64,000 bases of DNA from Anthoceros angustus. Lineage: Eukaryota > Plantae > Anthocerotophyta. The notes beneath the pieces are model-generated. The model saw nothing but the letters and a program-made list of their open reading frames with translations, was not told the DNA's origin and did not search any database. Below, one piece after another: positions 1 to 64,000 of the stretch; position 1 is the stretch's first letter; each line of letters opens with the position of its first letter. A program made the translations under genes and the position numbers. The stretch lies in the NCBI GenBank assembly GCA_010909165.1, contig MU008151.1, positions 868,001 to 932,000 on the forward strand, read 5' to 3'.

Positions 1-854
1 GCAAAAAAAACCGTGAGCAACAGCAGCACCAACTTGCTCAATAGATTGCCGAACCCCACTGTAGAAACCATTAACCTGGTCAAATATAGCAAGAGCATCT
101 CCTTGACACTTCAGCCACGTGTGCCATTGTGCAGTTGAAGGATTTTCTCACCTGGTCGACACATCCATGGCCTTCTGGAAAGGTGCAGGATTACCGCATT
201 AACCTGACTATCGTCTGCAAATGCAGCGACGAGACGTCCACGAGCCATTAGAAGGTTTATTACTCAGCTTCACCCAACCTCAACCGCAAACTCAGCATAA
301 AATACAGTGTTCAGCTATTTCGAGAGAAAACAGTACTCATAGCCTGCTATTCACTTGTGGAGAAACACCATGGGTTATATCCGCAATATCATTGCACTTC
401 CCTTCCCCATACGCCGACTTTGGAGAGCGTGTTGTTCCCTTTCACATTCACTGGCTGGCAGACCCTGATGAGCTTAGATTCATGAAAGATCATGTTATCG
501 AAAATTATAAGTAAAAGGGTTTCTAGACTGGATTCAGTTTCCATGGACACCCAACCCAGCCCAGCCCAGCCCATCATTCATCACAGGGACCGTGCACGGG
601 AGCCGTTTCCCGTTCCGTTCCGGTGTCCCGATCTCGACTGACCCGGACAAATTACCATTCCATTTACTTATTTTAGCATGTTTAAGTTTGGGCTGTTTCG
701 CCGTTCATGTGGGAAGTTTCGCTGCGTGGGGCCTGCCTGCCAGGGCTGAAGGCCGCGGGATGTGGTGTGGCCTGGAGGAGCTCAGCACCTGCCTGGCCCT
801 CATTCCATTCTAGCAGTCCGGGAAGCATAGCACAGCATAGCAGCATAGCAGAGC

Positions 855-3800
855 ATGGCGGAAGAGCATGAGGCGGAGGATTGGCGCGCGCTGCCGGTTC
901 AGCTGCAGCAGCTGCTGCTAGATCTGGGCCGGAATGCCGTGTCCGAACTACCCGATCTGCATAATGATGAAGAGTATGGCGGCTACTTCACTGATCGAAT
1001 CCGTGGTGATGAGGGAAGGCACTGGCGAGTGCGCAAGCGGGTGTTGACAGCCATTGCCAACTGCCGCAGTCTCGAGAATCTGGGTTTACACCAGGTGGGC
1101 CATCGGCTTGGATCGGGAGGATGAAGTGTCGGTTCTGTTGGGGGCCTGGCGTCCAACCCTTCCCTGGAATATCTGGGTGGTGGCTGTGAAGGTTTTGGAA
1201 GGCAGGCGGCTTGCGAGGCTCTGGGCCAGCTTGTTGCATCCAGTAGCAGCTTACGAAGGCTTTCATTACAGCATGTCGGGCTTGATGCCGCGGGACTGGG
1301 TGCCCTGGCCAAAGGCTTCAACAAGGACTCTGTCCTGGAGAAGTTGGTCTTAAGAGGGAACAAGTTGGGAGGTGCTGAAGGGGCACAGCACCTGGCCCGC
1401 ATTCTGGCCACGGCTCCCCGTCTCCAGGATCTGTCACTGGAAGGCATCGGCATGGATGTGGCGGGAGCCCAGTGTATTGCAAATGCTCTTCCGCTCTGTG
1501 CCACGCTCCGGTATCTGGCGTTGGACGATTCCCTAGGTCCCATTCCCGGTGGCCTCGGGCCCATGGGCACTGTGCTCGAACTTGCTTTCACCCGCGCTGA
1601 TGCTCATGAGAATGCTCCATCTCTGGCGTCACAGACCTTCATTTGGGTATCCTGGAGAACGGGGAGGCAGGCCTGGCAGACGCCCTGGCCGGAATGCTGC
1701 GTACCAACGATCGTATCGAGAAGCTTGTCACCACTCCATATGCTCTCATCCACGGCCTGGACGGGCTACGCCACAACTCCACCATATCTGAACGTCGTTT
1801 CAATGCATTCGAAGAGCCATCAGCTGCGACGGATGTGTGGATGCGCCTTGTCCAGTTGCTCCCGGAATGCAAAGCACTACGCGTCCTGAACTTGCAGTTT
1901 CTCAAGGGCCACGCCTCGTTCAAGAAAGAGTTGCTGAGATCCTTGGAGGGCAACGCATCTCTGAAAAAGCTCGACATTTCTTTCTGGGACGCCCTGGATC
2001 ATGACATGTTTAGAGACTTGATGAACTGTATTCAAGTCAACAAGACGTTACGGAGATCAACATCCAGGACAACATGGGAAGCGGAAGGAAAGGACGCAAT
2101 CATCAATGCAGCCTTGGCAGGCAATGCCACTCAAGAGGCTTACTGGCCTTTGCTCGTGGGCAGGCAAGGGCCTGTGATGCCCAAGGCTGGGCGCCTCTTC
2201 CTGTGCGGTGCCCTTTGGCAGGAAGACCACTCTCCGCACCACCATGATTCGCGCATGGAGACGACAGATAGCCGCATCACCCGAGTTCCAGCTCGGCCAA
2301 GTTCTAGCTCGACTGAAGGGAAAAATATTTCGGGCTTGGCGACGGATGGCTTCCGTCACCGGTACCAGAACGGAAGGCATAGAAATCGAGGTGTTGCGCA
2401 ACGACCATGATATGCAAGTTACCATGTGGGATCTGGCTGGACAAGCTCACTACCGAGCTCTGCAAGACTACCTTTTCCGACCTTCAACCAAGCATGTATC
2501 TTCCTGTTTGCGTTCAGCCCATTTGATGATCGGAAACCTCCCCAACTGGATCGGAAACCTCCCCAATGCATCCGTCTAATGTCCTGCAGGACAGGTTCAG
2601 AAGGAGCTTGGCGTACTGGCTTAGGTTCATCAACTCCAATTGTCGCAACGTGGGCTCTACTTTGCCTCAAATATTTGTGGTGGCAACTCATGTGGATAAG
2701 ATGAAGCGTTCTGATGCTGAAGCATTACCCAATCTCCTTCAACCCGTTCTGACAGAGTTGGCCACCGAGTTTGAACAGGTTGTTCACGTGGAAACAAAAC
2801 ACTCTTCTCCATGGACGCTCGATCTGCCAAGAGTGTGAAGCCCTTGCTGGACGCACTCATGGAATCGTTTCGAGCTCTATTTGCAATAAACTGTTTTGGG
2901 TACCTGAGGTATGCAACCGATTGAGTGCTGATTTGACTGCCTGGGTATCCCAACATCCAGCTCAACCGATGGTGAGGAAACAGCAACTTCAAACTTTGTT
3001 CCAAAACGAGCTACAGTCAGTTCCAAAACGAGTCGGTTCCACAAAGGTGGGGTTCAAGATGAGGGGAACGATTGGGAGCCATTCTTGCCTATTTGCATGA
3101 TGTGGGTAGTATCATCTGTTTTCAAGATACAGATGTTGTGGTGATAAATCCACACTGGATCAGTCACAATTTTTAGGGCGACTCATTCACCTTCTAACCA
3201 GAGCTTCTCCTAGAGGTTTGTCGCATTCCTCAGATGGATTTGTTGCTCAAAGTCTGCTTTATTCCACCTTGGATAAGATTCTCAGAGGCACACAAACGGA
3301 GGGGATTGAAAGGCAACATCTGGTATCGTTGATGACCACTCTCAACTTATGCTATGAAGAGGATCCGACTCGACGTGTCGGATTCTTCGTTCCCTTCACC
3401 ATGGCCGCCGGTAATGGTGACGCTCTTCCTGGGAGACGAAAGTTGAACTGGGAAACTGCTGATACAGCAAGCAATTACAACTACCTCGGAAGGAGGTTAC
3501 AGTGCCTTGACAAGACGAAGACGTTTCTTGGTCCAGGCTTTTTCCTAGATTCCAAGTACGATAACTACCAACATGTGTTTTGTTTTGATGGTGTGTGTCT
3601 TCAACCTGTTTACTGACATTGTGGAGGTTTGCGTATTGCAGGTCTGCCTTCGAAAGGATTTGTTAACCGGATTCCATGGCATGCAACCTCATCAATATCG
3701 TATTGAACGCAACCTCATCAACTTTTGTGTGATGGTATGGATGTGTTTTGGAAAGCAGTGGGGATATCGGAGAGGACACCGGAGACATCGGTGACCATAT

Positions 3801-5175
3801 TGATATTCTGGTGAGGTCATCCAAGAGCAAAGATGAAACTATCGAGTTTCTCAAGGAACATGTGGTTGCAAAGTTGAAATCTTTTGTGCTTCCCTGAAGG
3901 CAGTCCGGGAGTCGAGCTTGTGGAAGGAATTATCAGGACCGAGTGTGTCGAAAACCTCACACTCTGTATCTACCGGCATAACAGTCAGTGCTAACGCAGG
4001 ATTTGCTCAAGTGTGTTTTGCAGACCAACAAGACTGTACAGGGAGATTTTCTCCTCAATGGATCTGGCCGACTTCAAATGGTGGTGGCCAGAATGTCCTG
4101 AAGCCTCTTTGGAGTGCCTTTGAGGGAGCTGATGAGCTCTTAAGCACTGGTGAAGTCTTGGATGTCTTGCAAAGGCGACGAACAGGTCTCCGTCAAACCA
4201 TATCCAGCATAGATGCAGCTGTAGAGGAAGTCCTGCCTACAGAGGAAGGGGTGCTCGCACAACAAGACGCACCACTTCAAACGTCTCGGTTTGCCTACCT
4301 CCGACGTACTATATCCCTCCCTGGAACTAGTCACTCGGAGACGGGGGAGCAACTGTTGCAAACCTTCAATCATGGGATGAGAGATTTGAAGCACGACGTG
4401 AAAATGGTGGATACACGGTTGAAAATGGTGGAGACAGAGGTGAAAGCAGTGGGAGTCAAAGTGGATAGAGTTGGCGAGACTTTGCAACGTGAGATAAGCG
4501 ATATGAAGACCTGGCAGGAAGATACTCTACAACTCTTGCTTTCGAAGATGGATGAGATTATGAATTTCTCTGTAGAATTAGAAACCAGTCAGATACCCAG
4601 ACGTCCCTACTTCACCACTGCAGATGTGGGTCTGGCACAGAGATTGATTGCAGGGGTGCGTGTGGGCAAAGCGGCTAAGCTCCATTTCATGTGCGAAAAC
4701 ATCTTTGGGAATCACATCGTGCTGGGCCAAACTGGATTTGACTTGACATTGGAGGATGCGAAGTGGAGGTGGATCAGGCCCTTAGCAATCAACGGTGCAA
4801 AGCTATTGCTCTTCCTGGCCAAGGCTGGCCTACACGTGGCTGCCGGCATTGGGGTGCGGTTCCCGACCCTGCTACCAGCTTGGATGGAGCGGTTTCTGTG
4901 GCTGCGGCCTTTGGGAATCAGCCCTGTCCCATTTAAATCTGGACCTAACAGGACCAGCTGCGAGCCAGAACACTCCCGTGCAAGAGGCATGGATTGCTCT
5001 GAAGAATCTGTTGCAACCGTTGCTGAGGGATCAAATGGCTGACAAATTCCAACTGCACAAGGTGCAATATCGGAAACGGCAGGATGGAGGACGAGGAGTG
5101 GCATGGGTTTGCGAACGGTGTATGCGGAGGGAATTACGAGACAAGTCTATCAGCCGCTCTGACGGGAGCAACTAG
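855..5175 (+). CDS. TORNADO1-like LRR-Roc-COR (Roco) protein, copy 1; intronless, frameshifted in this sequence
   Basis: Stitched ORFs give RI-type LRRs (SLRRLSLQHV, LEKLVLRGN, LQDLSLEGI), Roc G1 RLFLCGAPLAGKTT (after restoring two homopolymer bases), G2 RTEGIEI, G3 MWDLAGQ and G4 VVATHVDK. The COR region (YWLRFINSN, LCYEEDP, FLGPGFFP) and the C-terminus (KLHFMCE..., KFQLHKVQY...VAWVC) are collinear with Arabidopsis TRN1 as recalled. Stop at 5173-5175. Confidence 0.85.
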
Positions 5176-6201
5176 AATGTCGTGTGTTGCAGCCTAACTT
5201 TGGCATTTGCAGGATGACTCTAGGAGCCATCTGCATCATGTGATTGGATAATGGTAGGTAGACAGGCATTAGAATGTAGAGCCTAATCCTGCTGTATCTT
5301 ACATCACTCTTTGCGAAATCCCACCTTTGTCGAATTCGTCCTTTTTTGGTTGTTCAAGCCTCTGACTCTTCCAGAACTGTGGAGGGCCCCTGGTTGGTGA
5401 AGGGAGGGATCCTCCAGAGTGAGCATGCATCAGTGGCCAGGAATGACATCGTGCCCTGCACCTTGGAGTAATGACTAACACAAATTTGATCTGTGCATCT
5501 GTAGATTTTAGGGGTACCAACGTCTTGGGAAGAACAGCCAACCCGATGTCAACCAAAAATCTATCCTACCCAAAATCTATCCTAACAAGCCAAAGGTGTT
5601 TGTCAGTAATGTTTTCGGGATCACTTTCTTCGTACAGTACCGTGCAGCAGCTCGAACCCTGCCATCTCATGACAGGTACAGCTGCTGATCCTAATTCTGC
5701 AGTCCAGAGGAAGCTCACGACATCACTAGAACAAAAAGTCACTGGATGTTTGAATGCGAATTGAACAACTGCGAAGGACTGCACTGTACTTCCTGCCAAG
5801 CGCTGGAAGGTTGATTGGACTGCGAGGTTTTGCAGGTTTGTCACTTTACTCCCTTCATTGACAAGTTCTCCACCTCACTTCAGAGTGAGTGGATGCTCAA
5901 TGCTCCCCTCGGCTGTAACGAAAATTCATGAACCGACAAGAAATATTTAGGCTACACAATTGATGGCAGTTGTCCATGTGGGGATCAGCTTTGGGAGCTT
6001 GTGGACAAGGGGTCGGGCTTCCTTGATCCGGAGGCAGTGGGAACTGGGACGTTTCAGCCTATGTCTGGGATCGAATAGGAGCTGTGCTCTCTGTACGGAT
6101 GCTCTTCGTCTTCGCATGGCATAGGAATCTATCTAAACTGGACATCAGTCGTGATGGTGAGGAAATGTGTACGGAATTCAGGTAACATGTAGCCCGAATT
6201 C

Positions 6202-8220
6202 GTGACATGGACTGCCATGATCGCAGGGTATGCTCAGCATGGACGAGGTCAAGAAGCGCTGGATTTGTATGCCTCCATGCAGCAGGACGGCTTGTATCCA
6301 GCCAATCACGTCACGTTTGTGTCCCTGCTAAAAGCGTGCGCCATTGTGGGTGCTTTGCATCAGGGCATGCAGCTCCATTCCTTGATTCGGAAAAGAGGGC
6401 TGGAGAATGATGTGGTCATTGGCAGCTGCCTGGTTGACATGTACGCAAAATGTGGGAACTTAGAGGATGCTCGTAAACTTTTGACAACCTGCCCACTAGA
6501 AGTGTGGTGACATGGAATGCCATGTTTGCAGGGTATGCGCAGCATGGACTTGGTCAAGAAGCCCTTGATCTTTATGCAAGCATGCAGCAGAGGGCAAGAC
6601 ACTACCTGATCGTGTCACGTTCGTGTGCCTCCTCAAGGCTTGTGCCAGCCTCAGGGCTCTGCAGCAGGAAAGCAGCTGCATTCTCTGATTCAGGAAAGGG
6701 TACTGCACACTGATATGGTTGTGGAAGCTGCCTAGTCGACATGTATGCCAAGTGTGGGGACATTGAGCTTGCTCGGAGGGTCTTTGACGAGTTGCCCAGA
6801 AGAGATGTTGTGACATGGAGTGCAATGATTGGAGGATATGCCAATCATGGCCTTGGCCAAGAAGCTCTTGATCTGTATGCAGTTATGCAAGAGGATGGCA
6901 TGGCTCCAGCAAATCACATCACTTTCGTGTCCCTCCTGAAAGCATGTGCCATTGTGAGAGCCTTGCAACAAGGAAAGCAGCTTCATCTGCAAATTGAACA
7001 AAGAGGATTAGAAAGTGATCTGGTTGTTGGCAACTGCCTGGTCGACATGTATGCAAGATGTGGAAGCTTAGAGGATGCACGCAGAATTTTGACCGGCTCT
7101 CTAGTAGAGACGTGGTAGCTTGGAATGCAATTCTTGGAGGCTATTGTCAGCAGGGGCTTGGTCAAGATGCGTTGGATCTTTATGCAAGTATGCAACAAGA
7201 GGTGCTGTCTGTGGGTAATCATGTTACGTTTGTCTGGCTCCTGAATGCATGTGCCAGTGTTGGAGGTTTGCATCAGGAAAGCAGCTTCATGCTGTGACCC
7301 AAGATAAGGGACTAGATTGTGATGTGGTTGTCGGCAACTGTCTAGTGGACATGTATGCAAAATGTGGGAGCTTGGAAGGTGCTCGCCAAGTGTTTGAAAC
7401 GTTGCCTGTGAAAGATGTGGTGACATGGAATAGTCTGCTGAATGGTTATGCCAAACATGGGGATGGCCACAGGGCAATACAGTTTTCGAAGAAATGCGGA
7501 GGAAGGTGTGGAGCCCAACGGTGCTACGTTCATTTCTCTGCTGGTAGCTTGCAGTCACAAGGGGCTGGTGAAAGAGGGCCAGCGGTATTTCAGGATGATG
7601 AAGGAGCAGGGCATTGAGCCAACAGACCAGCATCATAACTGCATGATTGATCTTCTTGGGCGGTCAGGGGATTTGGAGGCTGCTGAAAAATTGTTGCAGT
7701 CAGTGCCTTTGAAAATGATGTTGTGGGGTGGACTTCTTTGCTGAGTGCGTGTAAAAGCCATGGTGATGTAGAGCGTGGAAGGCGATGTTTTGAACGTCTG
7801 GTACGTTTGGAGCCCCAGACTGCAGCTGCTTATGTGCTACTGGGGAATATCTATGCAAATGCAGGCATGTGGGGTGATGTAGAGGAAATAGAAAGGTTGA
7901 GAAAGTGCGCAGGTGCTTGGAAAAAGCCCGCAAAGGCTGGTATTGAAGTGAACAATAAGGTGCACGAGTTCACCGTGGGAGACGAGAGGGTGACGTTGCT
8001 CGAAGTTGATTAGCATGAACGTGAGGGTGCAGGATGAAGGCGGGCACGTGCCTTTGACTGACCTGGTTCTGAAGGCAGTTTCAGAGAGTGAAAAGGAAGA
8101 TGCATTGTGTGGACATGCGGAGAAGTTGGCATTAGCATATGGCCTCCTTAACACTCCGGAGGGACAACTCTAGTGGTAACTAAGAACCTTCGCATGTGCC
8201 ATGACTGTCACAGTAGCACC
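6202..8220 (+). pseudogene. 5'- and 3'-truncated PLS-PPR with E1/E2 and a partial DYW:KP domain (duplicate of 45663-47686)
   Basis: PLS motifs (VTWTAMIAGY, VTFVSLLKAC, DMYAKCG), WKKPAKAGIEV, GHAEKLA at 8111-8131, KNLRMCHDCHSST; then an abrupt switch to DJ-1 5' sequence. Confidence 0.85.
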
Positions 8221-8431
8221 GAACACAGGGATGCCGATGCTTGCCACCTTCACGCTGTCGCCCATCGCATTGCTCTTGGAACAGCTGCAGCCTGGATGGA
8301 AGTTGGGAAGAACTGAAATGGGATTTGAAAGGCGTGGAATGGAGTGGAATGGATAGCCCTGGTAGCCAGGCTATATGGCCACACGCCTGCCTGGGGATGG
8401 ATACTATAGCCTTATGCTTTGATGGAGTCAC
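8221..8431 (-). pseudogene. 5' stub of the InhA-like gene
   Basis: Matches 48861-49066; the rest is deleted. Confidence 0.7.
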
Positions 8432-8962
8432 ATCCTGACGAAGTCATATCCTTGCGAAGTCCCATCCCGAAGAAGCATCCCTGATTGACGTGTTCCAGAG
8501 GAGGACACAGGCAGGTGGCCCAGCCTTGCATTATTGCTGGACATTGACGAGTTCAGTCATCACTGCGTACATCGCAGCCCGCCAGTTCGCACTCTCTCGT
8601 TCCTTGCAAGTACTTGTCAGGCCAGTGCCAGCTTGCTTTCAAGCTCACCTGTTGTGGACGGCATCTCCGTCATGGGCGCAAGTCTGTGAATACCGAATTT
8701 TAAACTATGTTTTAGAAACGTGATGCTTTCTCCAGGGCACGCAAGAAAACGTGCATGATATCGTCAACATGTGCCGGGCAATGACTCTTGATGCCTACCC
8801 AACCTTGACAAAGCTGTCATTCCTATGGCCCCCTTGACAGTTTCTTATCACCTGTTCAAATCTTGCCCAGGTAGAGAAGACTTCAAACCACCTCAGCCTC
8901 CCACGTGAATGGAGCCTCCTTAGTGTCTTCCAGTGCCATCCCCGTACTGCCCGGTATGCTGC

Positions 8963-9262
8963 AGGTTAGTTATCATTAACGGAAGTAGACCTAATTGTTG
9001 GAAGCATTTTTTGAACATTGACGTTAGGTTAGCTGAATGTTTGAAGACATGAGATTGGCAGTTCATAAACGACGAGGGTAGAGGCATAGGGGAGGTGTGT
9101 AGGATACTCTCTGCCCACATACACGATGACAACGACTAATTTCAAGCCGTATTACATCTTGAAAAGTAGAATGGTAATGGAAAATACTTTAGTTCCGTTT
9201 GATAATAATTTGGTAATAGGCTTGGTAATAGTTCGCATGGGCGATTTGTTAAGACATTGGAT
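8963..9262. mobile_element. Left half of the same TIR element family (also at ~49632-49950)
   Basis: Matches 25364-25660. Confidence 0.6.
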
Positions 9263-9618
9263 AGGGATAGATCCACAACAGGCAAGCCTAGATGAAAGGC
9301 TGTGTCAAGTGTTTTCCAAAACGAGCCACCGAGCAAGTAGAACCTGAGACTAGGTGCTGGGAAGTGGAGGACTAGGTGCTGGGAGGAGAAGCAGAAGTAA
9401 TTCCTCCTACCATGTCCGGCAAGAAATCCTGATCGAGTCTTTGCAGACTTTTCAAACGAGCTCAATGTGCGAAATGAAGCCCTGAGCAGGATCTCCTCCA
9501 GATGGGGCTTTCCCAGAGCAGGATCCCCCCCCCTCTGTCACAAGTTTAGAGTTTATAATATAACACAGTTGGACGACCAGAAGGCTTTCCCCCCTTTGTT
9601 GGCGCTGGCATCCAGGAG

Positions 9619-10234
9619 GAGTTTCTCAAGGAACCTGTGATTGCAAAGTTGAAATCTTTTGTGCTTCCCTCACGGCAGTCCGGGAGTCGAGCTTGTGGAA
9701 GGAATTATCAGGACCGAGTGTGTCGGCCTCACACTCTGTATCTACCGGCATAACCAGTCAGTGCTAACGCAGGATTTGCTCAAGCGTGTTCTTCCAGACC
9801 AACAAGACTGTACAGGGAGATTTTCTCCTCATGGGATCTGGCCGACCTCAAATGGTGGTGGCCAGAATGTCCTGAAGCCATTTTGAAGAATGCCTTCGAG
9901 CCAGCTAAAGAGCTCTTAAGTGCTGGTGAACTCTTGGATGTCTTGCAAAGGCGACGGACAGGTCTCCTTCAAACCATATCCAACATAGATGCAGCTGTAG
10001 AGGAAGTCCTGCCTGCAGAGAAAGGGGTGCTCGCACAACAAGACGCACCACTTCAAACGTCTCGGTTTGTCAGCATCCGACGTACTATATCCCTCCCTGG
10101 AACTACTCACTCGGAGATGGGGGAGCAACTGTTGCAAAACATCAATCAAGGGATAAGAGATTTGAAGCAAGAGGTGAAAGCAGTGGGAGTCAAAGTGGAT
10201 AGAATTGGCGAGACTTTGCAACTTATCCAACATG
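9619..10234 (+). pseudogene. TRN1-like COR/coiled-coil internal fragment
   Basis: Matches 3846-4490 and 18220-18844 (PGVELVEGIIRTECV...LLDVLQRRRTGL...DRIGETLQLIQH); both ends are joined to unrelated sequence. Confidence 0.8.
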
Positions 10235-10235
10235 G

Positions 10236-10352
10236 TGCTCCCAAGGCCAGGGTGAGCCTGCTGGTGCTCTCAAGGCCAGGGTGAGCCCCTACTGCTGGTG
10301 CTCCTGGGCCAGGGTGAGCCCCTACTGCTGGTGCTCCCAAGGCCAGGGTGAG
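10236..10352 (+). repeat. ~33-bp minisatellite, 4 copies (3 copies at ~50911-50998)
   Basis: gccagggtgagcccctactgctggtgct recurs at 10243, 10275, 10308 and 10342. Confidence 0.85.
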
Positions 10353-10619
10353 GAGATGGCCAGCGCCGCAGCCGAGCTGGGATGTCGCTGCAGCAGCAGT
10401 CCGCAAGGTTTAGGGTTACCGGACGATGATGGACAGGATGCTGCCGGGATTGCGGACGCTGCTGGCCCTGGCCATGCGGATGCCATCTCTGCCATGCTTC
10501 CTGAGCTGACTCTGTAGATCGATGCTACAGTCCGGGTCTACCGTATGCTAACTCAACCTTTCGTCATGTGGCTCGCACAAACTGTCAGCCTCATCTGCAG
10601 AGCGGTGATTACAGATGAG

Positions 10620-11000
10620 CATCACACAACGTCCATGGCTGTCCATTGCTTGCAGGCAATCATTGAACACCCTGCGAGCATCGTCCAGACTGCCACACTT
10701 CCACACATGGCAGACAGGAGCCAATAAACTCATCACCTTCTCGGGTCCTTGGCTGACAGGAGCAAGGCACACTAGTGTGAGGCCAATACTTCAAGGTGGA
10801 GTCGTTTCGCTGCAGAAGGGCAAAGATTCACATGCCGATACTGTCGGCAAGGGCTTTGAATGGGATGTCTATGGGGCAGCACGCACTGCTTTATATGTAT
10901 GCAAAGTGTGGGAGCATCATGGTTGCACAACGGGCTTTTGATAGACATATGCAGCAGAATGTGGTGGTAAGGAATGCAACGCTTGCAGCATACGATTGAG
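10620..11000. pseudogene. Short PPR S-motif shards in both orientations (duplicated at ~51290-51650)
   Basis: Minus: KCGSLDDARRVFN; plus: ALLYMYAKCGSIMVAQRAFD. Confidence 0.6.
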
Positions 11001-12294
11001 TTACGTAATCCTTTTCAATCTATTTATAAAGTTTTGATGTATTTAGAGCCCTTTACAAACAACTAAAATGCACATAAGCTTTAAAGGCGTTTTTAGATTT
11101 AAAATCTGTTGCGGGAAGAGACCTAGACTCTAGGCTTGAGTTGAGCTGCCCAGTCTACCATTACAACAAGTGAGGTGGCCTTCGCTTCCTACACGCCTGG
11201 CATCCCAAACACGGTTTGGCAGCTGTGTTAGGAGGCTCAGCTCGCATCGTCGCGATCGGATCGAAGGAGTCGGGAAGGGCTGGCCAAGGTTGGGGTAGGC
11301 AAGGCAAGGTAGCAGGGACGGGTGCGAGGCGGGCTGTCAGGGCTTCGCAGGTTGCTGCTTTCAGCAGCAGCGGGGGCTGAATGGAAGCCTGGCCCTCGGT
11401 TGTGGTGGTGGGAGGCCAGGTCAGTGGACTGACTCCCTCATTGGGGCAGCTTAACCTCACGTGATGCCTCTTTGTTTGCTGGTTTCCAGCTTGGTGCGCG
11501 TCTAGAATTCTGGTTCCTCTGACTCTGACTGTTTAACCTCGCAACAGAGTTCTGGAAAGTCGTCTGTGCTGGAGAGCATCGTGGAAGGATTTCTCGCCTC
11601 GAGGCTCAGGTGTGCATCTTCTTACACTGGATCACGGACGTGGACAGATCGAATTAGATGCAGGTTGGATCTAAAATGCATCTTTTCATGCTGTCGTTTT
11701 CTCGAAGCCCCGGCTGGATTCAGCATTAGGATGGTGATAGATCTTCAATTCACCTCGGTTTAGGATCGCGGCAAAGTGGGCCGGGTAAAGCAGATGTATT
11801 GCAAATGGCTTCCAACATGATCAGTGCGACGGTGATTTGTAGGGATTGTAACGAGGCGTCCCCTAGTTTTACAGCTGCACAAGATGGACAATGGTTCCGA
11901 ATATGGCGAATTTGTATGGCGCCGAAGAGAATGTTTACGGATTATGGTAATGTTGTGTACTTGCTTTTGATGTGGAGGTCTTCAGGATCTTGCTTGTTGT
12001 GCTTTGTGAGGGGACGCATGTTTCACTCTTTCTTCTTAGGGTTAGGGTTCTTTCACTTTTTTTTGCAAGTGTGGACGGTGAATATCGAGAAACTTGCATA
12101 TTCTGTTTAGGTCTTTCCATGATTATAGACGACTTTTGCAAGTTTCGACCTGACGAGTGAGTACGTGGTTGCAGCTGCTTTTAGGAAAGAAATATCTGAT
12201 GAGACCGACAGAGTCACTGGGCGCAGCAAGCAGATCTCTCCCGTTCCGTGTCAACTGAGCATATATTCTCCTCATGGTATGTCTACCCAGAAGA

Positions 12295-15000
12295 TTTACA
12301 TCTCAAATTGGAAGGATTTACTTGTGGCCCTACGGTCAAATGAACGATGAAATCTAATTGTGAAACAAGTCGACAGTATCTTTCACCCTTGTGATCATAT
12401 GCACGTGCTAGTAGTGAAGACGATCTCTATGCAAGGTTTGAAGTTTGTCAGGATGAGGCATAACAGGTTGCTACTCTATGATGTGATGCAGTGCTGAACT
12501 TGACTCTCATTGATCTTCAAAAGTTGTTGTTGGTAAGTGCTGACCATGCCTGTAGAGGCTAATTTCGGATGAGCCAGGGGCTAAATTGGAGCTAATTACT
12601 TTTTCTGTGTCACCTGCAGAGGGACAGCCTGACAGCAATATGGTTCGGTCATACGTGGAGAAGGTACCTTCCCGATCCTTGATGCCTTAATGCGATCATG
12701 GCTTCGTGTGGGTTCTCTTGCTCACCAGACAGAGCAGAGCCGCGGACTCGCCTTCCTGCGCCACGAAGAACTGGTTGCCGTAGCGGAATTGCAGCTCGAT
12801 GAAGAATTGGCGAGGCAGCAGGGAGTTCACAGCAGGTCCCACGTTGAAGTCGAGGATGTGCGGCGACGTCAGGTCCTGGATCATCACCACGATGGTGCGC
12901 TCGTCTGGACTCCACAGGCTCCGCAGCGCCTGCCCCGATGTGGCCGGGGTAGGCTCGGTTGTCGTCACCTCCCGGTGCGCTGCTCCACAACTGCTCCAGC
13001 TGCTTGCAGGCAGTCTGTTAAAAATAATAACCTGCGAGCATCGTCCAGGCTGTCACACTTCCGACACATGGCCACCAGATAGGAGCCAGTAAAAACTCAT
13101 CTTCGTTCTCGGGTCCATTGATGGCAAGGACGCCCGTATGCCCTCTCCAGAGGATTTCAATATCTAACAAGAACAACTTACCTTACGCCCACTGGAAATT
13201 CACTGATATCTGAATCATTGAAGGGAACGATGTCCATATGTCGTTCCCAGTTGATTTTCCATACGCAAAAACAACAACGATATGTAAGCCCACTGGAAAT
13301 CTACTGGAAAGGATTCCTCCAGCTCCTCGAGAGAAAACAGCACTCATACCCTGCTACGGTATTCACTTCTGGAGAAACATCATGGGTTATATCCGCAATA
13401 TCATTGTACTTGGAACCCTTCCCCATACGCTGACTTTGGTGCGCGTGTTGTTCCCTTTCACAGGCTGCCAGACCCTGATGAGCTTAGAGTCATGAAAGAT
13501 CTGATCATGTTATCGAAAATTACAAGTGAAGGGTTTCTAGGCTGGATCCAGTTTCCGTGGACACCCAACCCAGCCCATCATTCATCACAGGGACCGTGCA
13601 CGGGAGCCGTTTCCCGTTCCGTTCCGTTTACATCTCAAATTTGAAGGATTTACTTGTGGTCAAATGAACGATGAAATCAAATTGTGAAACAAGTCGACAG
13701 TATCTTTCACCCTTATGATCATATGCACGTGCTAGTAGTGAAGACGATCTCTATGCAAGGTTTGAAGTTTGTCAGGATGAGGCATAACAGGTTGCTACTC
13801 TATGATGTGATGCAGTGCTGCACTTGACTCTCATTGATCTTCAAAAGTTGTTGTTGGTAAGTGCTCCTTATGCCTATGACCATGCCTGTAGAGGCTAATT
13901 TCGGATGAGCCATGGACTAAATTGGAGCCAAATTGGAGCTAATTACTTTTCTGAGTCACCTGCAGAGGGACAGCCTGACAGTAATATGGTTCGGTGATAC
14001 GTCGAGAAGGTACCTTCCCGATCCTTGATGCCTTAATGCGATCATGGCTTCGTGTGAGTTCTCTTGCTCACCAGACAGAGCAGAGCCGCGGACTCGCCTT
14101 CCTGCGCCACGAAGAACTGGTTGCCGTAGCGGGATTGCAGCTCCACGAAGAATTGGCGAGGCAGCAGGAGTTCACAGCAGGTCCCACGTTGAAGTCGAGG
14201 ATGTGCGGCGACGTCAGGTCCTGGATCACCACGATGGTGCGCTCGTCTGGACTCCACAGGCTGCAGCGCCTGCCACGATGTGGCCATGGTAGGCTCGGTT
14301 GTCGTCACCACCCGCTGCGATGCTCCAGCTGCTTGCAGGCAGTCTGTTAAAATAATAACCTGCGAGCATCGTCCAGACTGTCACACTTCCGAAAGCGTGG
14401 CTTTTGCAAAAAAAAAACCGTGAGAGCAACACCAGCACCAACTTGCTCAATAGATTGCCGAACCCCACTGTGTAGAAACCATTAATCTGGTCAAATATAG
14501 CAAGAGCATCTCCCTTGACACTTCAGCCACGTGTGCCATTGTGCAGTTGAAGCATTTTCTCACCTGGTCGACACATCCATGGCCTTCCGGAAAGGTGCAG
14601 GATTACCCGCAGGGATTAACCTGACTATCGTCTGCAAATGCAGCGAAACGAGAGGCGCTCACACGAGCCATTAGAAGGTTTATTACTCAGCTTCACCCAA
14701 CCTCAACCGCAAACTCAGCATAAAATACAGTGTCTGGCTATTGAGAGAAAACAGTACTCATACCTGCTATTCACTTGTGGAGAAACACCATGGGTTATAT
14801 CCGCAATATCATTGCACTTCCTTCCCCATACGCTGACTTTGGTGCGTGTTGTTCCCTTTCACATTCACTGGCTGCAGACCCTGATGAGCTTAGATTCATG
14901 AAAGATCATGTTATCGAAAATTATAAGTAAAAGGGTTTCTAGGCTGGATCAGTTTCCATGGACACCCAACCCAACCCAACCCAGCCCATCATTCATCACA
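12295..15000 (+). repeat. Tandem ~1.3-kb units upstream of Roco copy 2 (equivalents at 52950-55558, period ~1.6 kb)
   Basis: tttacatctcaaatt(g/t)gaagg recurs at ~12295, 13627, 52950 and 54525; the units share long identical blocks. Confidence 0.85.
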
Positions 15001-15265
15001 GGGACCGTGCACGGGAGCCGTTTCCCGTTCCGTTCCGGTGTCCCGATCTCGACTGACCCGGACAAATTCCATTCCATTTACTTATTTTAGCATGTTTAAG
15101 TTTGGGCTGTTTCGCCGTTCATGTGGGAAGTTTCGCTGCGTGGGGCCTGCCTGCCAGGGCTGAAGGCCGCGGGATGTGGTGTGGCCTGGAGGAGCACAGC
15201 ACCTGCCTGGCCCTCATTCCATTCTAGCAGTCCGGGAAGCATAGCACAGCATAGCAGAGCAGAGC

Positions 15266-18200
15266 ATGGCGGAAGAGCATGAGGCGGAGGATTGGCGCGC
15301 GCTGCCGGGTAAGCTGCAGCAGCTGCTGCTAGATCTGGGCCGGAATGCCGTGCGCGTACTACCCGATCTGGATAATGATGAAGAGTATGGCGGCTACTTC
15401 ACTGATCGAATCCGTGGTGATGAGGGAAGGCACTGGCGAGTGCGCAAGCGGGTGTTCACAGCCATTGCCAACTGCCGCAGTCTTGAGCACATATTCATTC
15501 GGGCCGAGTGGGCCATCGGCTTGGATCGGGAGGATGAAGTGTCGGTTCTGTTGGGGGGCCTGGCGTCCAACCCTTCCCTGGAAGTACTGCTTCTGATCGG
15601 CTGTAAAGGTTTTGGAAGGCAGGCGGCTTGCGAGGCTCTGGGCCAGCTTGTTGCATCCAGTCGCAGCTTACGAACTTTCAGCATGGTTGGGCTTGATGCC
15701 GCGGGACTGGGTGCCCTGGCCAAAGGCTTCAACAAGGATTCTGTCCTGGAGTACTTGACAACGAGGTGGGAACAAGGTGGGAGGTGCTGAAGGGCACAGC
15801 ACCTGGCCCGCATTCTGGCCACGGCTCCCCGTCTGAAGAACTGTCACTGGCATCGGCATGGATGTGGCGGGAGCCCAGTGTATTGCAAATGCTCTTCCGC
15901 TCTGTGCCACGCTCCGGTATCTGGCGTTGGGTGATGGCGTTGCATTGCGGGGTCCCATTCCGGCGGCCTCGGGCCCATGGGCACTGTGCTCAAACTTGCT
16001 TTCACCCGCGCGGATGAGGATGAGAATGCCTCCATCTCTGGCGTCACAGCTTTCTTTGGATATCTCGAAGGATGGGGAGGCAGGCCTGGCAGACGCCCTG
16101 GCCGGAATGCTGCGCACCAACGATCGTATCGAGATGCTTCACCACTCCATATGCTCTCATCCACGGCCTGGACGGGTTACGCCACAACTCCACCATATCT
16201 GAACTTCGCTCCGGGATCAGATGCGCCAGCTGCGACGGATGTGTGGATGCGCCTTGTCCAGTTGCTCCCGGAATGCAAAGCACTGCGTGTCCTGGACTTG
16301 CATTGCTCAGGGCCACGCCTCGTTCAAGAAAGAGTTGCTGAGATCCTTGGAGGGCAACGCATCTCTGAAAAGCTCGACATTTCTCTGGGACGCCCTGGAT
16401 CATGACATGTTTAGAGACTTGATGAACTGTATTCAAGTCAACAAGACGTTACGGAGATCAACATCGGGGACAACATGGGAAGCGGAAGGAAAGGACGCAA
16501 TCATCAATGCAGCCTTGGCAGGCAATGCCACTCAAGAGGCTTACTGGCCTTTGCTCGTGGGCAGGCAAGGGCCTGTGATGCCCAAGGCTGGGCGCCTCTT
16601 CCTGTGCGGTGCCCTTTGGCAGGAAGACCACTCTCCGCACCACCATGATTCGCGCATGGAGACGACAGCCGCATCACCCGAGTTCCAGCTCAGCCAAGTT
16701 CTAGCTCGACTGAAGGGAAAAATATTTCGGGCTTGGCGACGGATGGCTTCCGTCACCGGTGCCAGAACGGAAGGCATAGAAATCGAGGTGTTGCGCAACG
16801 ACCATGATATGCAAGTTACCATGTGGGATCTGGCTGGACAAGCTCACTACCGAGCTCTGCAAGACTACCTTTTCCGACCTTCAACCAAGCATGTATCTTC
16901 CTGTTTGCGTTCAGCCCATTTGATGATCGGAAACCTCCCCAGGTGCATCCGTCTAATGTCCTGCAGGACAGGTTCAGAAGGAGCTTGGCGTACTGGCTTA
17001 GGTTCATCAACTCCAATTGTCGCAACGTGGGCTCTACTTTGCCTCAAATATTTGTGGTGGCAACTCATGTGGATAAGATGAAGCGTTCTGATGCTGAAGC
17101 ATTACCCAATCTCCTTCAACCCGTTCTGACAGAGTTGGCCACCGAGTTTGAACAGGTTGTTCACGTGGAAACAAAACACTCTTCTCCATGGACGCTCGAT
17201 CTGCCAAGAGTGTGAAGCCCTTGCTGGACGCACTCATGGAATCGTTTCGAGCTCTATTTGCAACTAAACTGTTTTGGGTACCTGAGGTATGCAACCGATT
17301 GAGTGCTGATTTGACTGCCTGGGTATCCCAACATCCAGCTCAACCAATGGTGAGGAAACAGCAACTTCAAACTTTGTTCCAAAACGAGCTGAAGAGTCTC
17401 CACGAAGGTGGGGTTCAAGATGAGGGGGAACGATTGGGAGCCATTCTTGCCTATTTGCATGATGTGGGTAGTATCATCTGTTTTCAAGATACAGATGTTG
17501 TGGTGATAAATCCACACTGGATCAGTCACAATTTTTTAGGGCGACTCATTCACCTTCTAACCACAGCATGTCTCCCGTCTACTAGTAGTTTGTCGTATTC
17601 CTCAGATGGATTTGTTGCTCAAAGTCTGCTTCATTCCACCTTGGATGAGATTCTCAGAGGCACACAAGCGGAGGGGATTGAAAGGCAACATCTGGTATCG
17701 TTGATGACCACTCTCAACTTATGCTATGAAGGGGATCCGACTCGAGGTGTCGGATTCTTTGTTCCCTTCACCATGGCCGCCGGTAATGGTGACGCTGTTC
17801 CTGGGAGACGACAGTTGAACTGGGAAACTGCTGATACAGCAAGCAAGTACATCTACCTCGGAAGGAGGGTACAGTGCCTTGACAAGACGAAGACGTTTCT
17901 TGGTCCAGGCTTTTTTCCAAGATTCCAAGTACGATAACTACCAACATGTCTTTGTGTCGATGGTGTGTGTCTTCAACCTGTTTACTGACATTGTGGAGGT
18001 TTGCGTATTGTAGGTCTGCCTTCGAAAGGATTTGTTTGGATTCTATGGCTTGCAACCTGAGCAGTATCGTATTGAACGCAACCTCATCAAGTTTTGGTGT
18101 GATGGTATGGATGTGTTTTGGAAAGCAGTGGGGATATCGGAGAGGACACCGGGACATCGGTGACCATATCGATATTCTGGTGAGGTCATCCAAGAGCAAA

Positions 18201-19513
18201 GATGAAACTATCGAGTTTCTCAAGGCATGTGATTGCAAAGTTGAAATCTTTTGTGCTTCCCTGAAGGCAGTCCGGGAGTCGAGCTTGTGGAAGGAATTAT
18301 CAGGACCGAGTGTGTCGAAAACCTCACACTCTGTATCTACCGGCATAATCAGTCAGTGCTAACGCAGGATTTGCTGAAGCGTGTTTTCCAGACCAACATG
18401 AGTGTACAGGGAGATTTTCTCCTCATGGGATCTGGCCGACTTCAAATGGTGGTGGCCAGAATGTCCTGAAGCCTTTTGAGAATGCCTTTGAGCGAGCTAA
18501 AGAGCTCTTAAGTGCTGGTGAACTCTTGGATGTCTTGCAAAGGCGACGAACAGGTCTCCTTCAAACCATATCCAACATAGATGCAGCTGTAGCGGAAGTC
18601 CTGCCTACAGAGAAAGGGGTGCTCGCACACCAAGACGCACCAGTTCAAACGTCTCGGTCTGCCAGCGTCCGACGTGCTAAATCCCTCCCTGGAACAACTC
18701 ACTCGGAGATGGGGGAGCAACTGCAAACCATCATTCAAGGGATAAGAGCTGTGGAGCTCAGCGTGAAAATGGTGGAGACAGAGGTGAAAGCAGTGGGAGT
18801 CAAAGTGGATAGAATTGGCGAGACTTTGCAACTTATCCAACATGAGATGAGCGCTATCAGGGCTGAGCAGGAAGCTACTCAACAATTTTGCTTTCTAAGA
18901 TGGATGAGATTATGAATTTCTCTGCAAAATTAGAAAGCAGTCAGATACCCAGACGTCCCTACATCACCACTGCAGACGTGGGTGTAGTACAGAGGTTGAT
19001 TGCAGGGGTGCGTGTGGGCAAAGCGGCTAAGCTGCACTTCATGTGCGAAAATATCTTTGGGAATCACATCGTGGAGGGCCAAACTGGATTCGACTTGACA
19101 TTGGAGGATGCGAAGTGGAAGTGGATCAGGCCCCTAGCAATCAGAGGTATCAAGGTTTTGGTTTTCCTAGTGAAAGCTGGCCTACATGTGGCTGCCGGCA
19201 TTGGGAATGCGGTTCCCGACCCTTCACCAGCTTGGATGGAGCGCTGTATCTCACTGCGGCCTCTCTGGACGCAGACCTGTCCAAGGTAGATCTCAACCTG
19301 ACAGGTCCATCGGCGGACCAGGACATTTCCGTGAAGGAGGCATGGATTACCCTGAGGGATCTGGTCAAGCCGTTGGTAAAGGATCACATCGGCGAGATAT
19401 TCCAACTGCATAGGTGCAATTTCGGAAAAGGCCTGAGGAGGACGAGGAGTGGCATGGGTGTGCCCAACGTGTATGCAGAGGGAATTGACAGACGTGTTTA
19501 TGAGAAACTCTGA
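15266..19513 (+). CDS. TORNADO1-like LRR-Roc-COR protein, copy 2; intronless, frameshifted
   Basis: Same start (MAEEHEAEDWRALP), same Roc motifs and COR/C-terminal motifs as copy 1; upstream region duplicated from 1-854. Confidence 0.85.
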
Positions 19514-20239
19514 TGGGAGCTACTCAAACGACGTGTGTTGCAGCATCACCCCAGGATTTTGGTACATGACTGGAGGAGCGATCTGCACCACGTGATTGGG
19601 TAGTGGTATAAGGATGTGTAGCCCAATCCTGCTTTGTTTCACGTCAGTCTTTGCTGATGGCCACCTCTGAATTCATCTTTTGAGTGGTTCAAGATTGTGA
19701 CTCTTGAACACGTTCCAGAATTCATGAACAACAGCAGGCCCCTGGTTGGTGAAGGGAGGATGCTCCGGTCTGAGCATGCATGAATGGCCAGGAATGACAT
19801 CCTGCCCTGCTCCATGAGTAATGGCTAATTCAAACTTCATCTGTGCTTCAGTATCTTCTAACAACTGGCGAGCCGGGGACAAGCAAGAAGCCTGGCTGCA
19901 AGAGCTTGACTGATCAGAGCAGTCCCACTCAGTTCCCCACGAAATGGACCTGTAGGCACCGGACCATGGGTTGTGAAGGCACTGGCTGCATATTTGTTGT
20001 CGTTTCATGAATATTCTTTACATCCGAGGGAATCACTCTTCTGAAGAGGCTGCCTACCAATTTCTGGTGGGTGCATCTCAGCTGGGTATTCTGTGGTGGG
20101 AACTCCGTTATCTATGGCTACAGCACCAATGCACTGTAGACGCATCGACTTGCTATGGGATTGGTGTGTGCAATAGAATGTGTGTGTTGTTTGGTGACTT
20201 CTTCTCAAAGTTCGGCATTTTGGAAACAGCAGAACCACA

Positions 20240-22779: not shown

Positions 22780-23345
22780 TTGGCCCGCATTCTGGCCACT
22801 GCTCCCCACCTCCGCCGTCTGGTGCTGAAAGGTATCGATATTGGCACGGATGTGGCGGGAGCCCAGGTAGTTGCAGATGCTCTTCAATAATGCAAAGCAT
22901 TGGGTGAGCTGAGCTTGGCGCATATCACTGGCCACGCCTCTTTCAAGAAAGCGGTGCTGAGATCCTCTGCGTGCAATGCATCTCTGACTGAGCTCGACAT
23001 TACGGCCTGGGATGACCTGAACGATGAGATGTTCGCAGACTTGATGCATTCTCTTCCGGTCAACAAAACACTGCGGGTCATCTGAATGCGTGGGACATCA
23101 TGGGAATGAGAGGAAATGACGCAACCATCTCCCGAGCCTTGGCACCCAATGCTACGCAAGAGGCTTACTGGCCTCTGCTCTCGGACGAGCCAGAGCCTCG
23201 GATGCCCACGGCTGGGCGCTCTTTCCTGTGCGGTGCTCCTTCGGCAGGAAGACCGCTCTCCGCACCACCTTGATCCGCGCATGGCCAGATTCATGCTTCG
23301 AGGTCGGGCAAGTTGGGCTGAAGGAGAAAATGTCGCAGGCACGGG
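22780..23345 (+). pseudogene. TRN1-like LRR-to-Roc fragment with an internal LRR deletion and stop codons
   Basis: LARILATAPHLRRLVLKGI...CKALGELSLAHITGHASFKK...NASLTELDI...LFLCGAPSAGKTALRTTLIRAW; in-frame TAA/TGA codons present. Confidence 0.75.
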
Positions 23346-24699
23346 GAAGGTGAGGAAGGGAAGGCGTGTTTCTGTCCTTTCTATCCAGGGTGATTTGGTA
23401 GTGGAGAGCGTCAGCGGGAAGCGTGGCTTTTGCAAAAAAAAAAAACCGCGAGAGCAACAGCAGCACCAACTTGCTCTACAGATTGCCGAACCCGACTGTG
23501 TAGAAACCATGAACCTTGTCAAACACCACCAGTTCAACAGTGATGAAGGCCACGGGGAACTACATCGAGTGCAGCAAATGCATAAAATGGTCAAGCTTGA
23601 AGGGCTGCTACACAGACAAGAGCGTCTCCTTGACACTTCAGCCATGTGTGCTATTGTGCAGCTGAAGGATTTTCTCACCTGGTCGACACATCCATGGCCT
23701 TCTGTAGCCGTCCCAAAACCGCTCCTGGAAGCGCGAAAGTGCAGGATTATCCGCAGAGATTGACTTGACTATCGTCTGCAATGCAAAGAAACGAGAGGTG
23801 CTCACAAGCCATCGCAAGGTTGATTACTTAGCTTCACCGAACCTCAACCGCAAACTCATGTTCAGCAAGTGTGCCCGCGCAAGGAGTCGCGCCAAGATGC
23901 CACGGTCTGCTGGATCGAGCACGGCAGCTCGAGGCTCAGCTCCGAGGACAACAACAGACGGAGCTCAATGCAGGGTTTCCTGCGAGTCTGGCCTGGGTCA
24001 GTACAGCCTGATTCTGGTTACAACATTTGCAGCCTAATTGTCACGGCGTACAACTTGGGCAGCCCGACATGAAGGCATCTGGTTTGCCTACGCTGCTGAA
24101 CACATCCACGGCCTCGTGCAGCCTACCTCCAGATGCATACATGCGCAACATATGGTGGTCCCCAAGTATGCATTTCACTCTTGCCCAAGTTTGACAGAGA
24201 GGTGGTCGCCCTGGCCCTCACAAGGTCATACCTTATATGGAGGAAGTTGGTTTCAAGGAACGGCACTGTGGCTTTCGATAGAGTCTTGGTTGGGAGATGT
24301 GTATTATGTGTAGAGGACTTGCATCTGCCTCTTGCCGTGGAATGATGCACTTTGTTCTCAGTGATGATGGAGCATTTGCAGAGGCCTGTGTTGCTGTCTG
24401 CCTGTCCCACATGGGCTTCTGACGAGAAAAATTCTCCAGCAAGGCGATCGGATCATGTGAGAATTTTGCCCTTTTTTACCCCATTTGCTTATTGTGGAAA
24501 GAGGTGTGCTGGATAACGTAGATGTGAGCGACTTGCTGTGAGACATATGGAATGCCCTGATGTCTTGTATGCAAGATTTTGTGAACTGAAATGTGCTATG
24601 ACCTTTGCCTTCTGGTGTGAATAGGAATCTGTTCCAGAGGCTGCAGCACCAACTTGCTGCGTATCCTTCTTTTCCTTCACAGTATGCTGGGTTCAGACA

Positions 24700-47500: not shown

Positions 47501-47788
47501 ATGAAGGCGGGCACGTGCCTTTGACTGACCTGGTTCTGAAGGCAGTTTCAGAGAGTGAAAAGGAAGATGCATTGTGTGGACATCGGAGAAGTTGGCATTA
47601 GCATATGGCCTCCTTAACACTCCGGAGGGGACAACCTAGTGGTAACTAAGAACCTTCGCATGTGCAATGATTGTCACAGTAGCACCAAGATTATGTCACG
47701 CCTTGAGCAGCGCCAAATCATCGTCAGGGATGCACACCGTGTTCACTGCTTTGTGGATGGCAAATGTTCTTGTGGGGACTGGCATTGA
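44591..47788 (+). CDS. Organellar RNA-editing factor: N-terminal extension + OSB-type PDF motif + PLS array + E1/E2 + DYW:KP; frameshifted
   Basis: LWQAFFSDPAQWWDCRQAKRSPRHPDFRHKRSKKALWIDN (two homopolymer bases restored); PLS triplets; WKKPAKAGIEV; 1-nt loss at the H(A)E codons (47581-47588) relative to copy 6202-8220; NLRMCNDCH...CSCGDWH* ending 47788. Confidence 0.85.
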
Positions 47789-48039
47789 GACAGTTCAAGT
47801 ATTTGGAACCAGGATGATTGCGAAGCACGGTGTGGGTACAGGCCGGGCATTCCACGACAATTGCGAATGGTTTGCTGCATTGGAAAACTGCAGGCAGCTC
47901 TGGAGATAAAAGGAGACAGCAGGGACTATCTGCTCGCTGTGACATGAGTACACATTTGTTGGGGCTCGGGCCCCGCCCTCTAAATTGCTGGCTGGCCATG
48001 GAAGCATCGTGGGAACTCCTTGAACCTCCTATCGATGTC

Positions 48040-63876: not shown

Positions 63877-64000
63877 ATCATTCATCACAGGGACCGTGCA
63901 CGGGAGCCGTTCCGTTCCGTTCCGGTGTCCTGATCTCGACTGACCCGGACAAATTCCATTCCCATTTACTTATTTTAGCATGTTTAAGTTTGGGCTGTTT

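Follow-up and report, generated by a model that had tools for sequence, protein, structure and literature searches.

Plant intracellular immunity is viewed almost entirely through NLRs. Clustered NLR and RLP families with frequent sequence exchange include the Cf-9/Cf-4 homologues, lettuce RGC2 and the Xa21 family. In brown algae, proteins that combine leucine-rich repeats (LRRs) with a Roc-COR GTPase unit, termed LRR-ROCOs, have been proposed to be immune receptors in which positive selection acts on the repeats' concave face; each of their LRRs, of about 23-24 residues, corresponds to one exon, and diversity arises by exon shuffling and alternative splicing (PMC3341825, PMC11378527). Diversifying LRR-ROCOs have thus already been published as candidate immune receptors for brown algae. 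TORNADO1 (TRN1, or LOPPED1), the sole plant Roco that has been studied, has a role in the patterning of leaves (PMC4104024, citing Cnops et al. 2006), and the same review, from 2014, confines ROCO genes to flowering plants (PMC4104024). Here we analyse a stretch of 64,000 nucleotides from Anthoceros angustus (contig MU008151.1, positions 868,001 to 932,000; the whole stretch is called the window below, and all coordinates are positions in it). The window is made up of plant nuclear DNA with PPR-DYW genes, and contains two copies of a TORNADO1-like Roco gene.

These two copies are nearly identical over long distances, and differ in short blocks spaced about one LRR apart that fall on the predicted beta-strands of the repeats and the turns that follow them. 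The Roco family with a variable concave surface is real and has many copies. In the reading that we favour, and consider reasonably probable, the window represents a cluster of TORNADO1-like Roco genes in which sequence exchange has homogenised the framework and selection on binding has diversified the strand blocks.

Two Roco genes and their relatives

Self-BLAST of the window pairs 3-5503 with 14410-19853 at 90.3% identity. This duplicated segment of 5.5 kb contains Roco copy 1 (855-5175) and Roco copy 2 (15266-19530), both on the forward strand. According to three-frame reading, tblastn, Pfam and BLASTP, copy 1 is an intronless LRR–Roc–COR gene on that strand, with an LRR region (about 855-2160), Roc (about 2170-2840), COR (about 2850-3750) and a TORNADO1-type coiled-coil and C-terminal region (about 3760-5175). 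Copy 2 has the same architecture, and its initial 174 codons are open. Three-frame reading and tblastn with full-length relatives (queries P0001, P0005, P0020 and P0021) present each copy as one uninterrupted gene, and there are no intron-sized gaps in the homology from 855 to 5175.

The COR-A domain (PF16095) passes its cut-off of 35.3 bits with 39.8 bits in 17188-17937, and a second, weak match to it lies in 3218-3616. Roc (PF08477) reaches 19.7 and 18.8 bits on broken pieces of open reading frame, where the cut-off is 27 bits; the region of these weak matches aligns with the Roc of P0005, P0020 and P0021 in tblastn, which also shows that the window genes are collinear with liverwort Roc-COR proteins. 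No piece of copies 1 and 2 has a Pfam match to a kinase, NB-ARC, NACHT or caspase domain, or to any further Pfam family, and the nucleotide switch of these genes is, as read from the sequence, Roc-COR and not NB-ARC or NACHT. Since Pfam gave nothing at E <= 0.01 on the LRR pieces, the type of LRR was settled by its fold (see below).

The C-terminus is collinear with TORNADO 1 of Ipomoea batatas, with 24% identity over 279 residues (BLASTP, E 3e-17). At the protein level, it is best matched by a transcript from the hornwort Nothoceros and next by proteins of Riccia and Marchantia, both of which have full-length relatives of about 1400 amino acids. The library of representative proteins contains no relative closer than 45% identity, and the in-frame N-terminus of copy 2 (174 residues) has no match among proteins of 96-304 amino acids. 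The window genes had been called TRN1-like Roco genes in a preliminary description of this DNA, and the COR-A match above cut-off, the collinearity with liverwort proteins and the E-value of the C-terminus all bear this out: by homology, they are TORNADO1-like Roco genes. Their multi-copy status, together with the 24% identity, suggests a paralogous clade that has expanded relative to angiosperm TRN1. Because of the liverwort and hornwort matches found here, the statement that ROCO genes occur only in flowering plants is outdated. We found no literature on an expansion of Roco or TORNADO1 genes in hornworts or other bryophytes.

Several TORNADO1-like Roc-COR proteins of liverworts (Riccia and Marchantia), 800-1480 amino acids long, are annotated as hypothetical (P0003, P0005, P0006, P0010, P0011, P0014 and P0049).

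Variable blocks on the predicted LRR face

When the two copies are aligned with MAFFT, they are near-identical over 240-1040 and 1906-3200, with 1-2% differences that are mostly single bases and 1-nt indels. Between these stretches, in the LRR zone at 1041-1905, the differences are gathered in 11 dense blocks of 6-27 nt each, 72-110 nt apart, and the spacers between the blocks are as similar as the surrounding sequence. The zone has 127 differing columns out of 882, and when these are counted in 12-nt bins, the ratio of variance to mean is 3.62, versus a maximum of 1.32 in 5000 shuffles. The differences have a period of 88-93 nt (autocorrelation peak at 91-94 nt, Fourier power at 88 nt), which is the length of one repeat of the ribonuclease inhibitor (RI) type. 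The preliminary description had the copies alike in the spacers and through Roc, with dense patches one LRR apart; the first statement holds up to 3200, and the second agrees with a clustering above that of all 5000 shuffles.

On the forward strand, with copy 1 given before copy 2, the blocks are block 1 (1073-1094 and 15484-15507, with copy 1 short by 2 nt), block 2 (1170-1188 and 15584-15605), block 3 (1258-1277 and 15675-15688), block 4 (1341-1355 and 15752-15767, with one additional nucleotide in copy 2), block 5 (1424-1442 and 15835-15848, 5 nt fewer in copy 2), block 6 (1525-1550 and 15931-15964, 9 nt more in copy 2), block 7 (1598-1605 and 16012-16019), block 8 (1635-1660 and 16050-16073), block 9 (1722-1727 and 16135-16138), block 10 (1794-1820 and 16205-16226) and block 11 (1879-1904 and 16285-16308). 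Among the peptide pairs that they encode, again with copy 1 first, are SLENLGLHQ/SLEHIFIRA (block 1), LEYLGGG/LEVLLLIG, RRLSLQHV/RTFSMV (block 3), LEKLVLR/LEYLTTR (block 4) and LDDSLG/LGDGVALRG (block 6). The peptide pairs listed previously could be reproduced where the reading frames allow, with the correction that both copies have many frame breaks. The hydrophobic core of the block peptides is mostly kept, in that L..L.L is replaced by L..I.I or L..F.M, which suggests that the block sequences were shaped in working proteins. In copy 1, none of blocks 2-11 breaks the frame, and the core residues of the LRR are preserved in them.

We modelled two stop-free pieces of copy 1 with AlphaFold, using shallow alignments of relatives: 1146-1613 (model 1; predicted local distance difference test, pLDDT, 79.8; predicted template modelling score, pTM, 0.79) and 1616-2212 (model 2; pLDDT 77.5). 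A fold search pairs model 1 with ribonuclease inhibitor and with the NLRP1, NOD2 and NLRP3 LRRs. Blocks 2-11 each begin inside a predicted beta-strand or at most 2 residues from one, as does a small CA/GG change at 2065-2066. In model 1, block 2 covers strand residues 6-10 and the following turn. In model 2, the corresponding strand residues are 7-9 for block 8 and 59-63 for block 10, each with the following loop, 36-39 for block 9 and 90-92 for block 11. The number of differing columns per codon is 0.06 in helices and 0.13 in other positions, versus 0.66 in strands and 1.25 in the four residues that come next. For the strand zone against the rest, a Fisher test gives an odds ratio of 8.8 (p 5e-13), in which codons are not mutually independent. 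The variation had been placed at the strand and turn rather than spread uniformly, and mapping onto the two models agrees with this. These models show an LRR of the RI/NLR type, with the differences between the copies on its beta-strands and the turns after them, and the variable concave face is presumably the ligand-binding face.

The similarity of the copies changes in steps along the genes. The homogenised tract at 240-3200 (forward strand), which pairs with 14662-17563, includes the upstream region, the LRR framework, Roc and part of COR, and has 1-2% substitutions outside the blocks. Substitutions rise to about 5% in 3201-4350, and overall divergence goes from about 1% to about 5.5% near 3200 and to about 17% near 4350; these steps imply the ends of exchange tracts. 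Synonymous divergence (dS) is 0.015 in the LRR spacers versus 0.20 in 4353-5040, and from this mosaic of silent divergence it follows that the 5′ 3 kb, promoter included, has been homogenised by exchange. Exchange of sequence between the copies had been suggested in the preliminary description, and the contrast in silent divergence between the 5′ and 3′ parts supports it. If the framework is common to all members, exchange would visibly alter only the blocks, and conversion tracts of block size would not be needed. Substitutions comprise 53 transitions among 92, and no single-base bias was noticed.

In the gap-free block codons of the two copies, dS is 0.59 and non-synonymous divergence (dN) is 0.47, for a dN/dS of 0.8, which is not interpretable because synonymous sites are saturated and indels are present. 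In the conserved C-terminus, dN/dS is 0.8-1.0, and the C-terminal halves of the two copies would be evolving in a nearly neutral way. With both copies broken and dN/dS near 1 in the 3′ half, plain neutral decay of duplicated pseudogenes could be proposed. However, such decay is not periodic, block divergence is about 40 times spacer divergence, and the blocks track the beta-strands. We therefore rejected plain pseudogene decay, which is hardly credible given periodic differences.

A separate observation concerns the linker before the coiled coil (4041-4350 versus 18409-18718). In its correct, stop-free frame, 25 changes are non-synonymous and 2 are synonymous, for a dN/dS of about 4.5 (binomial p about 0.02). 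The protein may have a second place of rapid evolution in this poorly conserved linker.

Family members in read contigs and frame breaks

Read contigs were placed on 700-5600 from DNA of the same species (X1), RNA of the same sample (X2) and DNA of two relatives (X3 and X5), and the 4.9-kb Roco stretch received 417, 163, 1493 and 566 contigs, respectively. Conserved parts of the Roco gene are present in the runs of four related organisms. A single place in a spacer, at 1328, is crossed by 10 distinct contigs of the same species (X1) and 25 of a related species (X3), which implies many distinct paralogues. An expansion of Roco genes in this lineage, as proposed previously, is supported by many distinct DNA contigs, and the genes are also present in RNA libraries. 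We also considered contig depth as a measure of copy number and discarded it as unreliable, since depths are sums of contig means and single-copy depth is maybe about 140 (from copy-specific contigs) or lower.

The contigs also hold further versions of the blocks. In both DNA and RNA contigs, there are in-frame third or fourth variants at blocks 2, 3 and 4. Block 3 has four variants within the species: a DNA contig reads L-R-T-L-S-A-P-F-V, an RNA contig reads L-R-T-L-S-V-P-H-V, and window copies 1 and 2 have L-R-R-L-S-L-Q-H-V and L-R-T-F-S-M-V. The third variant of block 2 comes from an RNA contig, with G>A at 1177 and G>T at 1180. Single letters that change a residue also set an RNA contig apart at blocks 2 and 4, and inside blocks 2-4, 6 of the 7 differences listed between an RNA contig and copy 1 change a residue. 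Two window sequences are directly matched: a 155-nt DNA contig equals copy 1 at 860-1014 with zero differences, and the letters of copy 2 at 1598-1604, in block 7, are found in DNA and RNA contigs. The letters of copy 1 at blocks 3 and 5 are in no contig; the contigs, which are from Logan, drop minority paths, and we did not count missing block variants as evidence of an artefact for this reason.

Neither copy can be read through without frame switches, of which copy 1 needs at least 12 and copy 2 at least 10; within the LRR region there are three breaks in copy 1 and many in copy 2. The Walker A motif (P-loop) of Roc, at 2207-2230 on the forward strand, lacks two bases in both copies, and GxxxxGK[ST] is therefore not intact. 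RNA contigs insert a C behind 2210 and a G behind 2220, which gives the canonical G-A-P-L-A-G-K-T. The restored P-loop accounts for nearly all RNA depth (422.6 of 430 for the C and 430 of 430 for the G, in X2), whereas the intact form is the minority in DNA (71 of 893 and 143 of 681, in X1). A further Roc frame break, at 2470-2480 on the forward strand, is common to both copies, with one base missing at 2473; a 376-nt DNA contig with a depth of 300 keeps this break, and a C is added there in about half of the RNA depth. The diverged gene fragment described below is missing, at 23247, the same P-loop G that is absent from copies 1 and 2, which would fit assembly noise. Because the Roc breaks are shared, a DNA contig keeps the break at 2473, and the C-terminal dN/dS is 0.8-1.0, copies 1 and 2 are probably pseudogenes, as dead or dying members of the family. 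It is fairly likely that the shared Roc breaks are real, with assembly noise on top of them.

Two further observations concern the breaks. A 20-nt tandem duplication at 2545-2566 breaks the Roc frame in copy 1 alone, and is missing from copy 2 and from the DNA and RNA contigs; it is either a private mutation or a head-to-tail duplication artefact. The length changes in copy-2 blocks 4, 5, 8, 9, 10 and 11 (15752-16308) are +1, -5, -2, -2, -5 and -2, all of which are +1 modulo 3, with a chance of about 1 in 32. We considered compensating frame shifts in copy 2 as meaningful and rejected this, because a return to frame is no commoner than chance.

Several observations weigh against the reading that we favour, and most of these would suit a different explanation, in which the assembly piled up reads of near-identical paralogues into chimeric blocks of the wrong length. 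The variability of the family would then be real, and these particular blocks and breaks would not. The length changes just mentioned, in six copy-2 blocks, are not multiples of 3, nor is that in block 1 of copy 1. Reading through the 2.5 kb of an unrelated PPR-DYW gene takes at least 7 frame switches. This density of breaks is similar to that in the Roco copies, and reflects either a region-wide graveyard of duplicated pseudogenes or about one assembly indel per 350-400 nt. Duplicates within the window differ by one homopolymer indel per 250-300 nt. Between RNA contigs and the window, single-base insertions are about as many as substitutions, and almost all of the listed indels are bases missing from the window. 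Many breaks may thus be assembly errors, with the copies intact after all. The runs of the same species contain 22-30% of the 31-mers of either LRR region, and together with the absence of the copy 1 letters at blocks 3 and 5 from all contigs, this leaves the exact block sequences of the window copies partly verified; some may be garbled consensus. Furthermore, two full copies are readable, and the other paralogues are known from contig difference tables alone. Finally, the saturated synonymous sites in the blocks imply that the blocks are old or were replaced wholesale, and are not recent point substitutions.

On the other hand, the 155-nt DNA contig and the copy 2 variant in block 7 show letters of the assembly in contigs, and blocks 2-11 of copy 1 stay in frame with their LRR core kept. 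The missing variants are no evidence of absence, as Logan contigs lose minority paths. In addition, context-dependent errors on identical sequence cannot produce periodic differences. We consider an assembly artefact unlikely as the source of the blocks and breaks.

Layout of the cluster and comparison with known systems

In self-comparison, the larger repeat layout of the window consists of copy 1, a stretch with PPR and other sequence at 6202-14712 that recurs at 45663-55558, copy 2 and a further Roco upstream region at 63514-64000. The last of these, on the forward strand, resembles 284-698 and 14707-15112, and another Roco gene probably starts just past the end of the window. A Roco C-terminal fragment at 9619-10222 (forward strand) is about 92% identical to 3844-4488, and has a twin at 50293-50897. 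A diverged paralogue fragment at 22781-23340 (forward strand) spans LRR unit 5 to the start of Roc, with 78-79% nucleotide identity to copies 1 and 2 (over 22781-23284) and with both ends truncated. It was previously described as a third copy that differs at the same positions; it does differ at the strands, but it differs elsewhere too. Its repeat 6 is fused directly to repeat 11, so that relative to copies 1 and 2 four repeats, about 370 nt in all, are missing, and this loss implies unequal exchange between repeats.

Other repeats accompany the Roco genes. Head-to-tail repeats of about 1.33 kb occupy 12295-14960, just upstream of copy 2, and occur again at 52950-55558, upstream of the presumed next copy. 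The final part of the repeat unit is the Roco 5′ region, upstream pieces of which recur at 23419-23858 and 63514-64000. The PPR-DYW gene at 45330-47800 has a partial duplicate at 6202-8220 that is 98.7% identical.

The presence of gene fragments scattered across the cluster raises the possibility of a dedicated diversification system, in which gene conversion would draw on the broken copies and fragments as a store of strand-block cassettes and write these into one or a few expressed Roco genes, either in the germ line or in somatic cells. Saturated blocks next to spacers with a dS of 0.015, a repeat number that varies among copies, and broken copies that are apparently the majority in DNA, when an intact P-loop makes up at least 98% of RNA depth, would all fit such a system, which would be similar to the way chicken immunoglobulin genes are converted from pseudogene templates or lamprey VLRs are assembled. 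However, no donor for any of the 22 block variants was found in the rest of the 64 kb when 1-2 mismatches were tolerated, no conserved signal was found flanking the blocks, and no enzyme candidate was seen. Ordinary exchange and selection in clusters like those of R genes give the same picture. We regard a cassette system as highly unlikely; if true, it would mean that a land plant has a combinatorial repertoire generator without NLRs, possibly a somatic one.

The favoured reading, of a cluster diversified by selection on binding, can be stated as follows. The window would be part of a cluster of a multi-copy TORNADO1-like Roco family, in which each protein would have an RI/NLR-type LRR as its sensor, Roc-COR as its GTPase switch and a coiled-coil C-terminus of the TORNADO1 type. 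Within tandem duplications, gene conversion and unequal crossing-over would keep the helical framework and Roc-COR near-identical, synonymous sites included, and 4-9 residues per repeat, on the beta-strand and ascending turn of the concave face, would differ block by block among paralogues. The point that calls for an explanation is that saturated differences at the strands persist across the family, for which diversifying selection is the usual answer. Long-term diversifying selection on binding specificity in functional members would be the likeliest cause of this diversity, after which exchange between members would have reshuffled the blocks, in the mode of NLR/RLP clusters and brown-algal LRR-ROCOs. 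A few intact members would give rise to the RNA.

We infer from the models that the LRR face may sense ligands, and, by analogy, a role in immunity or symbiosis is a candidate function. The immune-receptor reading is reasonable in view of its published analogue, and brown-algal LRR-ROCOs would be its closest precedent. The LRR face could instead serve a non-immune purpose, such as binding endogenous partners in development, self/non-self or mating recognition, or control of selfish elements. The role of TORNADO1, the sole plant Roco that has been studied (PMC4104024), would agree with this, nothing in this analysis ties the family to microbes, and the DNA around the cluster is duplicated and rich in repeats, and contains PPR genes and gene fragments. 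However, birth and death in multi-copy clusters, pseudogenes, a variable repeat number and hypervariability of the concave face typify receptors that keep up with fast-changing ligands, and the brown-algal LRR-ROCOs are interpreted as receptors (PMC3341825). We think a non-immune role quite unlikely.

If the immune-receptor reading is true, these genes would be the second case after brown algae, and the first in land plants, in which Roco GTPases were recruited as variable receptors. They would then be a concrete candidate for pathogen or symbiont recognition in a cyanobacteria-hosting lineage. Given how sharply blocks and framework contrast, there is also the question of the mechanism by which the framework becomes uniform and the blocks nevertheless keep their differences.

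Compared with the systems described so far, the proteins of the window resemble TORNADO1 in their N-terminal RI-type LRR, Roc, COR and long C-terminus with a coiled coil and a conserved hydrophobic block, and in the absence of a kinase. However, TORNADO1 is a conserved developmental gene, whereas the window family is multi-copy and clustered, with pseudogenes and a hypervariable LRR face, in a bryophyte-like plant. Animal NLR LRRs and ribonuclease inhibitor are the best structural matches (NLRP1 LRR with a template modelling score of 0.71-0.74, RI with a root-mean-square deviation of 1.6 over 113 residues, and NOD2), but the repeat fold alone is shared; there is no NACHT here, and no detectable family relationship in sequence.

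Like the NLR/RLP clusters, the Roco genes are in tandem, with a homogenised framework, hypervariable solvent-exposed positions of xxLxLxx, pseudogenes and fragments, and a variable repeat number. Unlike them, they have a Roc-COR GTPase in place of NB-ARC and an LRR of the animal NLR/RI type, and are not known to have a resistance function. With the LRR-ROCOs of the brown algae Ectocarpus and Saccharina, they have in common the combination of LRR and Roc-COR, fast birth and death, and variation at concave-face positions. On the other hand, the window genes are intronless and do not show the pattern of one exon per LRR with exon shuffling; their repeats are of the RI type with 28-33 residues, their variation lies in short blocks within a single uninterrupted coding sequence, and their C-terminus is of the TORNADO1 type.

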